Notes under the pieces: generated by a model | What the model was told of the DNA's origin: nothing | The model's database searches: none | The model's input: only the letters and a program-made list of their open reading frames with translations | Program-made: the position numbers and the translations under genes | Assembly (NCBI GenBank): GCA_965644295.1 | Contig: CBFFRP010000457.1 | Span: 124,001 to 188,000, forward strand | Direction: 5' to 3' | Length of the DNA stretch: 64,000 nucleotides | DNA from: Paraphysomonas bandaiensis | Lineage: Eukaryota > Protista > Chrysophyceae | Shown here: piece by piece, positions 37,201 through 43,668 of the stretch | Position numbering within the stretch: position 1 is the stretch's first letter | Layout: each line of letters begins with the position of its first letter

Positions 37201-39543
37201 TCACGTTAACGAGCTCTGTTTTTTGGAGAGAGACTTCCGTGGGGGCTTCCTATCTCTAGGATCTTCTGTAACCCATGGACCGTAAAGGTCCTGATGCGCG
37301 CACACTCTAAATAGAGGTGAATCCCTGAGTTTGTGAATTGTAGATCCATCACCAGACTCCTTGCATGAGGATATTGCCTCCGTAATTAGTTCCATCCAAT
37401 CCATCTTGTGGCGTATAGAGGGGGCGTAGATGACCCTCGACCTCTGTTGGCCGATGGAAAGTAGGTTCGACAGCCTTTTCGGTACCACTACAGAGGCATT
37501 ATTGTCCACCAGTCGCAACGCAGCAGTTGTGTTTGGAGCTGTTACCGGTCGTTTAGCACATTCACTATCCCATTGGTAGTGTGAGCACTCCAGAGCAGAG
37601 AGCTCAATATGAAAGCCATAGGCTAACTCGTGAGTGTGCTCTTCAACGTGTGACGGAGAAACATACATTGCTAATAGAATAGTACTCAAAAGGAATACTT
37701 CCACAATCCTTGGCCTGCTAATGCCTTGGATTGCCTCCCCAGAGGAACGTTCGAAGAAGAATCCCACAGCGATTAAATGCGGACGATCACCTGCTTTGCC
37801 TGAGAGAGCAGTTGCCACCGCACCACGACACTTGTCCGTCGCACACTGGGCAAGAATATTCTCACACAGCTCTTCTGCGTGGAGCTCCATCACTTGTCGT
37901 AGATGAACTGCCCCTTGGGATCCCTTGCCTGTACTCGGAAGGTGTGAGTTACGCGCCATATCTTCCAGCACGTCGCACATTAACCACCATCTAGGCTGAA
38001 TCAACATCACATTCCGTCGCTTTATTGCAAGCCATCTGGAAGAGTCACTAACTTCTTTTCTTACGTCAACACCAGAAGATTCTTTTAAATTTTGCATCTC
38101 ACCCAGCATTGTATTGACCAGAGCAGCCCGAGTCGATATACAGTAAATATCATTATCGGCAGTGTTTTCTCTTAGAATCTGACATATATCGCTAACCCAT
38201 GCGTCTCTTTCTGCTATGCTTGAAGCACAGAGGTAAAGAACCTTCCGACGAGAGATAATAATAAACCAGGAGCTTTCTGTCGATGACAACATACTAGGAA
38301 GAGGAAGGCACAAAGTTCCGGTACCTTTCCCTAGCGATATGCAGCATTGCAACCTGAGACCCATATCGACAAATGTGGAGCATAGCAACAGATCCGAACA
38401 GACGTGAACAACACATTCGCCTACGCCACCTCCACTTCCAACACTGCTAGTACTGCTGCTGGCACCGCTCTCTATCCGACCACGACATTGGAAATGGCGC
38501 CTCAATCTGCCCTCTCTCACGACTGACCGCCCACGCCTGACTAAAGCCTCTATATCAGTCCTAGGCCTCGTTCCTGAGTTCAGAAACCTTTGGTAGAGGC
38601 TATGGAGTTTCTGCAAGTTACGGTGCTCCATGACTTCATTAAAGCAGTCCAGCAGACACGTTGTACAAGCTCCCAAAAGCTTTTCAGAGGAAACTTCCAT
38701 TGAGCAGAGAACTTCCTGATATTCAAAATCTGCTTCTTGTAAACCCAGAAGAACATACCTGTGGGCGTCCGCACAGGTGGCGACATAACTGGGCAAACCA
38801 CGTACTGCCAATTCAGAGAGATGTAGCAAGTTGCGCATATCCACATGTATAGAGAATTCCGGGAATTCGGTGGATAATCTGTTGCATAATTCGCGGAGAG
38901 GGTCATAAAATCGTATTATATGGCGATGCACGGACATGAGTGGGACAAGCTTGTGAAACAATGTGCAGATTGTGGTATGTATATGGACAATGCGCTGTAG
39001 TGCTCTGTCCTGATCACTCACAAATGAGCTGACATCAAGACTAATACTCTTAAGGCCCTGTACGATCTGTTTGCTCAATACAATTGCGCTGTCCACAGCA
39101 ACACTGAACCCGGCGAATGGTGCCGATGAAACAAAAGCACACACAGAGCTCGATGTGACCACAATACAATCTTGCAGATATCTATACAGCTCTTGGAGAC
39201 GAGTGCAATATTCTTCCTCCAACTCAATACAAGACTTGAAAACAGCGAGCATAGAAAGCAATGAAGAGATGGGGGCTCCGATGCTTCTGTTGGTAGAGTC
39301 AGTTGCAGCATGCATGTTTATGCACCGGGGATGCAACACAGCGCCTTTCTCTTGCAAAAACACACTGAGGAACTCCTCTGGAGACACCTCATTGAATGAT
39401 TCCCTCTGCACAGAGGCACTGGGGGCTCTATTGGGGTTAAGCGGAGGGATTATCTGCTGATGGTGTCCATCTTCATTGTCAGATATGGATTGCTGGTCGA
39501 TATCGCTCTCGTCCAGTAGGTCCTGTGCCATCTCCAGGTCCAT
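37201..39543 (-). CDS. Divergent DH(RhoGEF)-like helical region plus two PH-like domains
   Basis: 780-aa ORF. GRSVVREGRL...CSDLLL...LYLCASSIAERDAWVSDI and VFLLSTILL...IYAPSIRHKMDWMELI resemble FGD-type PH domains. ELEEEYCTRL resembles a DH start. Confidence 0.6.
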   Translation of the reverse strand: MDLEMAQDLLDESDIDQQSISDNEDGHHQQIIPPLNPNRAPSASVQRESFNEVSPEEFLSVFLQEKGAVLHPRCINMHAATDSTNRSIGAPISSLLSMLAVFKSCIELEEEYCTRLQELYRYLQDCIVVTSSSVCAFVSSAPFAGFSVAVDSAIVLSKQIVQGLKSISLDVSSFVSDQDRALQRIVHIHTTICTLFHKLVPLMSVHRHIIRFYDPLRELCNRLSTEFPEFSIHVDMRNLLHLSELAVRGLPSYVATCADAHRYVLLGLQEADFEYQEVLCSMEVSSEKLLGACTTCLLDCFNEVMEHRNLQKLHSLYQRFLNSGTRPRTDIEALVRRGRSVVREGRLRRHFQCRGRIESGASSSTSSVGSGGGVGECVVHVCSDLLLCSTFVDMGLRLQCCISLGKGTGTLCLPLPSMLSSTESSWFIIISRRKVLYLCASSIAERDAWVSDICQILRENTADNDIYCISTRAALVNTMLGEMQNLKESSGVDVRKEVSDSSRWLAIKRRNVMLIQPRWWLMCDVLEDMARNSHLPSTGKGSQGAVHLRQVMELHAEELCENILAQCATDKCRGAVATALSGKAGDRPHLIAVGFFFERSSGEAIQGISRPRIVEVFLLSTILLAMYVSPSHVEEHTHELAYGFHIELSALECSHYQWDSECAKRPVTAPNTTAALRLVDNNASVVVPKRLSNLLSIGQQRSRVIYAPSIRHKMDWMELITEAISSCKESGDGSTIHKLRDSPLFRVCAHQDLYGPWVTEDPRDRKPPRKSLSKKQSSLT

Positions 39544-39744
39544 GGCAGGGTAGGGTGAAGGGTTATGATGGATAGGATAGCATTGGTGTGGAGATAGTCA
39601 TGTATATATGCATGAGACAGCAGAGTTATGTATGTATGGTGAGGGATGTACTGCACATACAGATACTGCGTATAGAGGTACATAAGCATATGGTCCGGGA
39701 TATATACGTGTACTAGTGGGTGAAGTAGAGCAGTACATACCAAT

Positions 39745-40165
39745 GATAGGATACTTCTGTATGTATGATATACAGCAGTACGGGTATCCACAGGTACATG
39801 AGTGTATGGTGTGTATGTACCTCTAGGAACCCTCCTGTGCATACTCTACTCTACTCCATCCTATAGTATGTATATATATACAGCAGTACGGATCTGGTAT
39901 ACAGGTACAGGTATCCACAGGTACAGGAGTGTATGATGTGTATACAACATCAGCACTCTCACTCCTTTCATAGGAACCCCCCCCCATACCTACACTACAC
40001 AATACTATACTCTACACTATACTCTGTAGTATGTATACATATACAGCAGTACGGATCTGGTATACAGGTACAGGTATCCACAGGTACAGGAGTGTATGGT
40101 GTGTATGTACCTCTAGGAACCCTCCTGTACTCTACTCCATCATACACATACAGCAGTACGTGTCC
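39745..40165. repeat. Local direct repeats in the divergent promoter
   Basis: tatacagcagtacggatctggtatacaggtacaggtatccacaggtacaggagtgtatg recurs at about 39877 and 40040, with a shorter variant at about 39770. Confidence 0.8.
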
Positions 40166-40317
40166 ACCTCTATGTATGTATGTCTATGTATGTATATATA
40201 TACGTGTGCCATCTCTCATCTCTACACACATATATCCATATCAATCTCCTCATACACACACCTCACAACATCCTAACCATCACATAACTCTCTCCCTCCC
40301 CCCCCCTCTAATCAATC

Positions 40318-42102
40318 ATGATCGTTGCAGACCGTAACATGCTAAAAGCCTCATTAGCTAAAGGCGTATTAGAGATCCAACTCACACTCATTCAACTCTA
40401 TACAAGTAACCTCAACGCTATTGGTACACAAGCAGCTTTAGTAGCTGGATTTGCTTTTACAGGCATAGCAGAAACAACATATCCAAGTGGAGAATTTGTT
40501 GATAGTATTCTTGAATACTTTTATTATTTTTTTATTACTTTATGTTTAGTTTCGGGTCTGTTTGCTGTATCCCAATCAACTATCGTTACTTTATATGGAC
40601 CAGCTATGGCACTTAGTGGTGAAACACCTGAAGCTGTAACAAAATCTGTATCAAATATGAGAACACAACAAGATTTTGTATTTAAAGTTGGTGGAGTATC
40701 GATTACATCACTGTTTTTATCGGCTATAGTCCTGTCATGGGCTAGACGGCCGAGAGGAGTGGCGATTCTCAATACGATTGTATATATGGGGGTCTACTAT
40801 CTTATGGTGACGGAAGGACGAAAGGCGTATCTTTTGTTTGCATCTATCAAGGAAGAGGTGGGAGCGTATGAGGAAAAATCAGGTATATCTCTGTGGTGTC
40901 TGAGTGGTAGAGCTTGACTGGATTGGTGTATAGGTAAAGGAAATTCACCTGCACTGTCCCGCGCCAAGAGCGATGTCAACCCCATGGTGACTGCTGCACA
41001 TGATGGCGTCATGAGCGACAATATGTCTGCAGTAGGGAGTGGTGAGAACGATCAGACTGCAGAACAGGTATGTACTGCTAAGTGCGAATTATACTGACGT
41101 ATACGCACACACGATACTAATGGACACATATTGTCACATAATTCATTTGTGTTTAGGGCACTCAGACGAGGGCAAGAGGCGCTCTCTGGATGCGACAGAG
41201 TCTTTCTAAAGGCGGAGAGTTGCAACTATGCTATGCAGTACTGGAGAAGGGCAAGTTAGATATCTACCGCAAGGAGTCGGTAAGTATATATGACAAAATT
41301 ATTTCCAATTTTTTGAAGGCTGAATTTTGTGTAGGATTTCGTTAATCACGAGAATCCTATTAACCAGAGACCATTTCAACTGTGGAAGTACCGTCTTGAA
41401 CTCGATCCCAGGTAATGCATCTGTTGTGTACGTACGGTGTATACCGCGTGTACCTCACTGGAACATCAGTGCGCATGAACCAATATATAAATTTAACAAC
41501 CCATTTATAGAAAGTTCAACCGTGGACTTACATCTGCCTCAAAGTCTCTTCGAAAATTGGCCACTGGGCAGGGCGAGTTTTCAATCACCCAGCTGGCTAC
41601 CTCTGACTACGATTTGAAAGAAGCAGTCCACAAGTACAGGTTTATACTTTATCCTAAGGTAACTAAAATGCACCGTGCAGTGCACCCAAATATTACCACT
41701 CCACTGATTTAAGTATTTAATTTTATTATGGAAGTGTGACGGTGTTGTCTACTTGTAGGTGCTCTCTGAGCTTACCCCACTGGCTACTGGAGAGTTCATG
41801 GCCAACGATGAGCAGTCATATAAACTTTGGATCAAAGCCTTGTCTAGAGTCATCCGGTATATATGCATTATGTGTCATTTAAAGAGAGTATATGTGTGCT
41901 TTGTGTATAAATTTGTGGTGAGTCAACGTCTAGCCTAACATGGTATATAGGTCGTACGAACACATCGAGGCGAACCCTACTGTTGAGGCGACAATGAGGT
42001 AACTAAGTATACAATGTATTCTTCGTTTTACTCAAGTATGTGAACTTTAGGGCAAATGCTAATGTGGAGCTTGCTGTAAATGCCGCCAGTCGATCCAGCT
42101 GA
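40318..42102 (+). CDS. Orai-like 4-TM protein fused to a C-terminal PH domain, 8 exons
   Basis: Exons 40318-40882, 40934-41067, 41157-41279, 41335-41411, 41511-41658, 41759-41857, 41951-41998 and 42051-42102 join in frame. TM1 is QAALVAGFAFTGIAE. PH-like motifs RGALWMR, YAVLEKGKLDIY and FMANDEQSYKLWIKAL. Confidence 0.75.
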
Positions 42103-42301
42103 GTGTACATCTTGGAACCTACCCGAATTATATTCTTCCTGGTGTAACAAGGTCCAATAGCTGGATTTTTTGCTATTTATCTATAGCAGTATCTAAATAT
42201 CTGTGTTTCTGCGGTGTTCATTCCGATGCACTAGGAAAAGCTTGTATATTGACAATAATAAGGAGCTCATATTTTCACGTTCGTTTTTATTCTCTTTCTT
42301 C

Positions 42302-43668
42302 TCTGCAGTATGATGCAATATATATTGTGCAACTGAAGTGAGTTAATAGTGTGCAATAGTTGAAGCCAACTCATAGGTTACAGAGGAAGTAAATTCAGTT
42401 GCTGATATGTGACTATGTAAGGTATAGGAGTGACTGGCGAGCATATGATAAACAGATGTTCACCAGATGTTACAATGTCATGAGTATGATGTAGCGATGT
42501 GTTTAGATTAGTAATTATAATTTCTTACTTGAAAAAAGTGCATTGTGTGCAACAGAGAAAGGTAAAGGTTTACGTGTAGAGCAATGTTAACTTCAGTGAA
42601 AGGTTCAATTCTAGCATGGCAGCGAGTGATAGTTTAGATGAGAAGGCGACAGAGGACAGTCAGATTCTGAAGTTGGACAAGTAGAGTCGAAATAATCACC
42701 TGGGGCTGGAACCGAAAACTACTAGAGGGGGTAGAGCACGAGAGTTACGGCATGAGCGAAATGACACTGTGTTGCAACGATTTGGAAGGCTTGTGAACAT
42801 GACGCAGATGTGTTGGAGGTTTCGAACCAATACATGGAGGCAATGGCGCTACTACCAGATGATGATCTCAATAAGGACGGTTTGTCCTATCAGATGCCTC
42901 AAATGTTGGTAGATAGGTTCGGGGTGAGTTGGAAAATGCACTCTAGAAGACTACAGCGATAGTTGTATCCTCCTCTTTCACGTGTACAGATGATATGGGA
43001 TAGGAAGTAGTGCTAAAAAGCTTTCTCCTAAATCACCCATACTTGTCATGTCTAATTATAGCTACATCATATATGTCAAAATTAATAATCTATCTAGTCT
43101 AACGACAATGCTTTTTCTTTAACGATCTAAACAGGTGCAGTGTTTTTAACGATCTGAAGTGTGAAAAAGGTGCAGGGGTATGATGCCTGTTTACCCTCTC
43201 AACTATTCTCTACCATACCTACTACATTATGTACTTAATACATCTGTTTCAACAAAATCGCATCAAAACAGTTGCAAAAGAGTTTATAATATGCCCTAAG
43301 CAAAAAACTGTTCTTTTCTGAGGATGTTAGAATTGAACCTTTCACTGAAGTTAACATTGCTCTACACGTAAACCTTTACCTTTCTCTGTTGCACACAATG
43401 CACTTTTTTCAAGTAAGAAATTATAATTACTAATCTAAACACATCGCTACATCATACTCATGGCATTGTAACATCTGGTGAACATCTGTTCTCAGCAACA
43501 TATGTTCGCCAGTCACTCCTATACCTTACATAGTCACATATCAGTAAATGAATTTACTTCCTCTGTAACTATATTCTCCCGTTACACCTATGAGTTGGCT
43601 TCACCTATTTCACACTATTAACTCACTTCAATTGCACAATATATAATATATATTGCATCATACTTCAG
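42302..43668. repeat. Long inverted repeat / foldback-like element, arms 42302-42617 and 43324-43668
   Basis: The arms are reverse complements. The inner ~135 bp differ at about one position. Spacer about 700 bp. Confidence 0.92.

Follow-up and report, generated by a model that had tools for sequence, protein, structure and literature searches.

Gene structure and expression

The window, by which we mean the whole stretch of 64,000 nucleotides of Paraphysomonas bandaiensis DNA that was analysed, carries at 40318-42102 on its forward strand a gene of eight exons with an open frame of 414 codons (Table 1). The seven introns all run from GT to AG and measure 51-100 nt each. A mechanical list of open reading frames holds exon 1 of this gene only, as the earlier note on this DNA, made from its letters alone, had remarked in proposing a spliced gene here; the eight-exon model and the transcripts bear that proposal out. 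The encoded protein consists of a four-helix membrane domain that resembles the calcium channel Orai, a linker, a PH domain with an insert, and a conserved tail.

Table 1. Features of the Orai-PH gene and its surroundings, in window positions.
Feature	Position	Strand	Content	Basis
Divergent neighbour	37204..39543	-	Single-exon open reading frame of 780 codons	
Intergenic repeats	39734..40106		Direct repeat, about 83 nt, in three copies	
Exon 1	40318..40882	+	ATG, entire four-helix Orai-like domain (residues 1-188), start of linker	Open reading frame and splice donor
M1 helix	40321..40473	+	Residues 2-52, predicted to line the pore	Gapless HMMER alignment to Drosophila Orai L151-E178, DSSP of model
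Glu52 codon	40471..40473	+	Counterpart of Orai1 E106 and dOrai E178 (selectivity filter)	HMMER alignment
M2 helix	40504..40617	+	Residues 63-100; G80 at the position of Orai1 H134 and dOrai H206	Alignment, model
M3 helix	40627..40746	+	Residues 104-143; ends in conserved W141-A-R-R-P; S134 where Orai has its TM3 Glu	
M4 helix and cytosolic extension	40753..40875	+	Residues 146-186, predicted single unbroken helix without Pro kink	
Linker	40876..41049	+	Residues 187-227, about 40 amino acids, across the end of exon 1, intron 1 and exon 2; no conservation	Alignment
Exon 2	40934..41067	+		Joints 40880/40932 and 41065/41155, four runs
Exon 3	41157..41279	+	PH beta1-beta3, including the codon of the nearly invariant Arg246 (41193-41195)	Alignment, model, transcripts
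Exon 4	41335..41411	+	Beta3-beta4 loop with conserved P-x-N..P motif, then beta4	Alignment, model, transcripts
Exon 5	41511..41658	+	Most of the conserved insert (297-342, about 45 residues, largely helical), then the following strand	Alignment, model, transcripts
Exon 6	41759..41856	+	Final PH strands, onset of the PH C-terminal helix, conserved Trp373	Alignment, model, transcripts
Exon 7	41951..41998	+	PH C-terminal helix completed, conserved tail begins	Alignment, model, transcripts
Exon 8	42051..42102	+	Conserved C-terminal tail helix (motif ...V-E-x-x-V-x-A-A-N/S), stop codon	Alignment, model, transcripts

Public transcript contigs from four runs, belonging to four studies of which one is a polyA metatranscriptome, were aligned to positions 40150-42350. 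In all four runs the seven splice joints lie within single contigs and fall at the modelled exon borders, so the membrane part and the PH part are carried on one mRNA. The contigs start between 40263 and 40298, and one of 1447 nt extends from 40298, 20 nt 5' of the ATG, to 42277. This continuity across both halves in four runs excludes an artefactual gene fusion or two neighbours that were wrongly joined, and the joint-by-joint reading that the earlier note had suggested as a check shows transcripts that continue through the PH exons rather than ending before them.

Protein sequences from other sources agree with the model. A word-index protein search retrieved a Paraphysomonas transcriptome peptide of 318 residues (P0012, MMETSP1103) that corresponds to residues 97-414 and is identical at 317 of the 318 positions; its taxid, 36769, denotes the genus Paraphysomonas within the Chrysophyceae. 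A full-length transcript open reading frame from a related species (P0165, 412 amino acids) is 77% identical and shares both start and architecture. Taking the transcripts together with the homology discussed below, we are highly confident that the locus expresses an Orai-homologous membrane domain fused to a PH fold.

The divergently oriented neighbour has been considered as a functional partner. The earlier note described it as DH-PH-like and saw in the pair a hint of a signalling module. Its C-terminal half, scanned separately, does match Pfam PH at 25.6 bits; a search of the 780-residue protein against Pfam gave no DH match, and language-model features placed it with RhoGEF-PH clusters at 0.88-0.90 on the basis of few shared features, a weak lead. 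By tblastn, no homologue of the neighbour was found on four related contigs that carry Orai-PH genes (L001-L004). The neighbour is thus not conserved beside the relatives of the Orai-PH gene, and the idea of a two-gene module finds no support.

Two further observations concern the flanking DNA. On contigs L001 and L002, where the first 128 residues of the relative are 82% identical, the Orai-PH gene is preceded by a very large open reading frame of more than 3700 codons (1-5609, minus strand) that runs off the contig and is unrelated to the 780-codon neighbour in the window. Of the three repeat copies between the two divergent genes of the window, two agree at 96% and the third at 61%; their spacings are 127 and 163 nt, and the surroundings are rich in GTAT/TACA. 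They may represent a promoter-region repeat or the remnant of a mobile element.

A remote homologue of Orai

The relationship of the membrane domain to Orai becomes visible at the level of sequence profiles. Searched singly, exon 1 reaches 17.8 bits against the Pfam Orai-1 family over residues 25-92, below the cut-off of 25. Neither phmmer with exon 1 alone, which gave no match among PDB sequences, nor a narrow profile of 13 sequences found Orai in the PDB. The one profile that links the family to Orai there is a broad one built from 108 relatives. In HMMER it retrieves the Drosophila Orai chains 6BBF, 6AKI, 6BBG, 6BBH, 4HKR and 4HKS at E = 4.7e-11 to 6.7e-10, followed by the next PDB match at E = 0.36, a likeness well outside what chance would give. 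The match comprises two ordered stretches, TM1-TM2 and TM3-TM4. Pfam Orai-1 is itself matched by 28 of the 108 relatives at E <= 0.01 (best 1.3e-9), and one family member, P0130, exceeds the curated threshold (28.2 bits, covering positions 8-168 of the 173 in the model), while matching the profile of the window gene's family at 6.1e-19.

The alignments also reproduce what the earlier note had read from the letters. HMMER aligns TM1 without gaps, from I25 to E52 against L151 to E178 of the fly protein, which puts Glu at the filter position E106, and it pairs ITLCLVSGLFAVSQST in TM2 with TTLLVAVHMLALMIST of Orai. The proposed order of four transmembrane helices followed by a PH-like domain with a large insert is likewise recovered by AlphaFold2 and fold searches. 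For exon 1 the predicted model has a mean pLDDT of 93.6, with helices at residues 2-52, 63-100, 104-143 and 146-186. In Foldseek its top PDB matches belong without exception to Orai, at probability 1.00 and E from 5e-3, with TM-scores of 0.59-0.73 by target and 17-20% identity. In an exhaustive structure search with VIA-align, Orai 4hkr_A ranked third, with Z 10.5 over residues 18-180 and all four helices; its identity of 20% is by far the highest, and it is among the few matches that reach the fourth helix. Unrelated long-helix bundles score up to Z 12.6 in the same search, and for this reason the homology is not rested on shape.

The same middling structural matches of helical bundles, together with single-sequence Pfam scores that remain sub-threshold, are what would speak for a likeness that is convergent or spurious, the domain then being a generic four-helix bundle such as PGG or the product of two genes wrongly joined. 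Against this stand an Orai-specific profile match that preserves helix order and has no gaps in the motifs, the passage of P0130 over the Pfam cut-off, and transcripts that span both halves in four runs. The comparison of Orai-1 with PGG, which the earlier note had asked for, favours Orai: no PGG match appears in Pfam at E <= 10 for the window protein or at E <= 0.01 for the 108 relatives, and with the profile E-value of 4.7e-11 this speaks against PGG or another fold. We reject a spurious likeness on these grounds and would give it hardly any weight. At the profile level, the evidence places the domain in the Orai superfamily.

Pore residues and gating features

Compared with animal Orai (human Orai1 and Drosophila Orai; PF07856; 4HKR, 6BBF, 7KR5), the domain shares the helix order and a long M1 that reaches into the cytosol. 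Common to both are the gapless TM1 motif A-L-x-x-G-F-A ... E with the filter Glu and the Leu and Phe of the pore stretch, the S-T motif of TM2, the conserved Trp of TM3 and a cytosolic C-terminus. L41 and F45 correspond in the HMMER alignment to the fly pore residues L167 and F171, and the Glu52 codon is without variants among the transcript contigs. Overall identity is about 20%, and the window protein has no N-terminal cytosolic region before M1.

The differences are concentrated in residues that control the animal channel. The hydrophobic gate of human Orai1 is formed by V102 and F99; in the window protein F45 is kept and T48 replaces the gate Val (V174 in fly, V102 in human). The basic ring, R155/K159/K163 in fly and R83/K87/R91 in human, becomes T29/N33/T37. 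Further substitutions turn H134 into Gly and the TM3 Glu into Ser, and the Pro of the TM4 kink is missing, this helix being straight in the model. Four features tied to STIM-dependent gating in animal Orai are absent, namely the basic ring, the gate Val, the TM2 His and the TM4 Pro kink. Two of them, the basic ring and the Val gate, are functional hallmarks of Orai. The C-terminus is also of a different kind: where animal Orai has a short M4 extension that binds STIM, the window protein continues into the linker, the PH domain and the tail.

Mutational work on human Orai1 offers a frame for reading this set of residues. Each of the substitutions V102A, H134A and P245L makes the channel constitutively active (PMC7948504). 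Gating is lost when the basic ring is neutralised and returns with V102A, the rescued 3S+V102A channel being non-selective and still requiring an activating signal (PMC7034092). The natural residue set of the window gene resembles that rescued mutant with its neutral ring and altered gate. From this resemblance we infer a pore that could open without STIM-type latches, for which some activating input would still be needed. On the same alignment, selectivity for Ca2+ should not be assumed from the Glu alone.

Family spread and variation at the filter position

To what extent the filter Glu is a constant of this family can be judged from its relatives. A profile of 13 close relatives was searched against 1.84 billion representatives and found 1359 clusters (50% identity) at E <= 0.001, of which 454 lie at E <= 1e-10. 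Nearly all family clusters start at residue 1 with M-I-x-A/G-D-K/R. The column of the gate Val holds T 33 times, S 17, A 12, G 8 and V 7 across the family, and T37 and N33 are the commonest residues at their positions. The pair G44-F45 and the pore-facing L41 and F45 are conserved in the family alignment.

A quick maximum-likelihood tree of 95 membrane domains separates into two well-supported halves. The window gene belongs to a small clade with P0001, P0019 and P0003, and P0020 and others lie nearby. Within this clade, whose rows share 47-90% identity, E52, T48 and, for the most part, G80 stay constant, which indicates selection on the Glu. A neighbouring clade of 20 rows, largely PH-fused, has S, Q, D, N, T, G, A, L or F instead. 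Counted over about 98 of the 108 aligned rows, the Glu column holds E in 41, Q in 14, T in 9, S in 7, G in 6 and N in 4, the rest being other residues or gaps. With such wide variation at this position, the Orai fold is no guarantee of a Ca2+ filter.

This variation bears directly on whether the window protein is a Ca2+ channel, as the earlier note had proposed. What stands of that proposal is an Orai-family module with the filter Glu in place; its functional part depends on a single residue, found in 41 of the roughly 98 rows, and the basic ring and the gate Val that accompany this residue in animal Orai have been replaced. An Orai fold that forms no Ca2+-selective channel would account for the same facts. 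The protein could then be a non-selective pore, a pore for another ion, or a non-conducting anchor that presents the PH domain, with the Glu as a remnant or in another role. The composition of the column, the sister clade that is largely PH-fused and lacks the Glu, the missing basic ring and the Thr at the gate all speak for this, as do the non-selectivity of the comparable 3S+V102A mutant of Orai1 (PMC7034092) and the existence of relatives with other C-terminal domains. It accords less well with the clade of the window gene, where E52, T48 and mostly G80 do not vary, or with the conservation of L41, F45 and the G44-F45 pair facing the pore. We regard a fold without Ca2+-selective conduction as rather improbable, and favour a cation channel for the window gene.

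The fusion to a PH domain recurs in at least 20 representative clusters (50% identity). Some apparently short relatives are incomplete gene calls that continue into PH exons when followed by tblastn, for example P0003 on L004, so the fusion is commoner than protein lengths suggest. The nearest clusters in the ESM Atlas are eukaryotic and mostly from haptophytes, with Pfam Orai-1 recognised in 11-14% of their members. Other C-terminal additions occur in the same Orai-like family: P0074 carries a double zinc ribbon and P0151 a kinesin motor fragment, the latter possibly a merged gene call. These examples suggest that the membrane module has been combined with various cytosolic domains. A separate case is P0001, a protein of 302 residues that is 90% identical to exon 1 and is recorded at NCBI under Symbiodinium microadriaticum, from a contig of 3.1 kb, as an 'unnamed protein product'. 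Being near identical to the Paraphysomonas gene, it looks like chrysophyte contamination of a dinoflagellate assembly.

The PH domain, its insert and the tail

The C-terminal region is recognised as a PH domain chiefly through its fold. Against Pfam PH the window protein and P0012 score 16.8 bits and the orthologue P0018 scores 18.6 (model positions 9-104), with a cut-off of 25.1; the family member P0097 reaches 41.3 bits. A profile of 19 C-terminal regions finds only PH domains in the PDB, all of them weakly. The structure was modelled for residues 227-414 with the sequence taken from P0012 (131-318), and AlphaFold2 returned strands and a helix at 141-163 in model numbering, at a pLDDT of 83.5. 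Among the best 50 PDB matches of this model, all 50 are PH domains (probability 1.00, TM-score by target up to 0.79). They include AKT3, anillin, DAPP1, SKAP55, PLEKHA7 and several 'split' PH domains, and the matches in the ESM Atlas are PH proteins too.

Several elements distinguish the domain. The Trp of the C-terminal helix, Trp373, is nearly invariant. After the fourth strand the fold is interrupted by the conserved, partly helical insert, and beyond the fold an unusually long C-terminal helix is followed by a further helix (393-412). In the long relatives, few parts are as well conserved as the motif of this tail helix, ...T-V-E-x-T-x-R-x-G/N-x-x-V-E-x-x-V-x-A-A-N/S. The split PH domains of PLC-gamma, PIKE and ROCK II and the PH domain of Niban, which are among the best structural matches, share the beta-sandwich, the C-terminal helix with its Trp and a long insert. 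No sequence relation to them is detectable past the generic PH profile; the insert of the window protein is a conserved, family-specific element rather than another domain, and its additional conserved helix after the fold is a further difference.

A PH domain at the inner leaflet invites the thought of phosphoinositides, and the earlier note had proposed gating or targeting by these lipids. Phosphoinositide binding is weak or absent in most PH domains, and the canonical motif K-Xn-(K/R)-X-R in beta1-beta2 marks the lipid-binding subset only. In the window protein this motif is incomplete: the Arg that closes beta1 (R246) is present, as in 18 of 19 aligned PH domains, and the basic pair of beta2 is replaced by Gln and Cys. 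Several paralogues, among them P0033, P0081, P0059 and P0056, keep the beta2 basics as K/R-x-R, K-R or R-K-R. A channel whose PH domain truly senses phosphoinositides, for gating or for targeting, would draw on the tethering of the fold at the membrane, the retention of R246, the basic residues of these paralogues and the presence of the lipid-binding PH domains of AKT, DAPP1 and PLEKHA7 among the top structural matches. The Gln and Cys in beta2 and the generally poor lipid binding of PH domains weigh against such a sensor, as does a pattern of conservation that is highest in the insert and the terminal helix and not in the beta1-beta2 loop. A phosphoinositide sensor of this kind is possible, though we doubt it, and control of the channel by phosphoinositides appears to us equally doubtful. 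Of the earlier proposal, the PH fold remains; phosphoinositide binding is not indicated for the window copy.

Weak lipid contact could still matter, because a short linker tethers the domain to the membrane. For the window copy, such proximity-aided contact or a protein partner is more likely than high-affinity binding of phosphoinositides, and a protein partner or an intramolecular role of the insert and the tail is at least as likely as weak lipid contact.

Orai without STIM

Orai homologues outside the animals are known. STIM is confined to animals and choanoflagellates, and homologues that keep the Glu without STIM occur in brown algae, oomycetes and diatoms; non-animal Orai is also found in green algae and early land plants (PMC11085791). 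The diatom homologues include a divergent class (PMC11085791; Collins and Meyer 2011, as cited there). STIM is not expected in the chrysophyte lineage, and the STIM independence proposed in the earlier note is plausible. The homologues of the other stramenopiles are similar to the window gene in keeping the filter Glu in lineages without STIM, and their organisms are stramenopiles like Paraphysomonas. No PH or other fused domain is mentioned for them in PMC11085791. In the searchable literature we found no description of a natural Orai-PH fusion. What is already known is thus the divergent, STIM-less Orai of stramenopiles, while the fusion to a PH domain was not found described.

In the reading that we favour, the gene product would be a subunit of a chrysophyte Orai-family channel. 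From N-terminus to C-terminus, the protein consists of the four-helix domain starting at residue 1, the loose linker of about 40 residues, a cytosolic PH domain with its insert of about 45 residues, and the terminal helix. Subunits may assemble as in Orai around a pore lined by TM1 and conduct cations, probably including Ca2+, not necessarily with CRAC-like selectivity. Opening or placement of the channel would be controlled in cis by the PH domain and the tail, which would replace the STIM-binding C-terminus of animal Orai. We judge it probable that the protein functions as a cation channel and that its own PH and tail module controls it. The PH domain could serve gating, trafficking or scaffolding.

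A wider and more speculative version extends this arrangement to a large family of protist Orai channels that are self-contained, with a built-in activator. There the PH domain, its insert and the terminal helix would respond to a membrane lipid or a GTPase by opening the pore in cis, much as the activating fragment of STIM does in trans in animals, and paralogues of one genome with and without the Glu would co-assemble and so set selectivity. We consider this extension unlikely as a whole.

Because STIM is missing from the non-animal lineages, the activator of their Orai homologues is unknown, a gap that is acknowledged in the field (PMC11085791). An expressed and widely conserved Orai-PH fusion is a concrete candidate for the missing control element in lineages without STIM, and the gene is a construct open to ordinary electrophysiology and lipid-binding assays. 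Models of Orai gating could profit from the pore as a natural experiment, since changes that are made in Orai to uncouple gating from STIM are its native state: the gate residue is polar, the TM2 His has given way to a small residue, TM4 is unkinked and the inner ring is neutral. This design may show how Orai is controlled in organisms that have no STIM.
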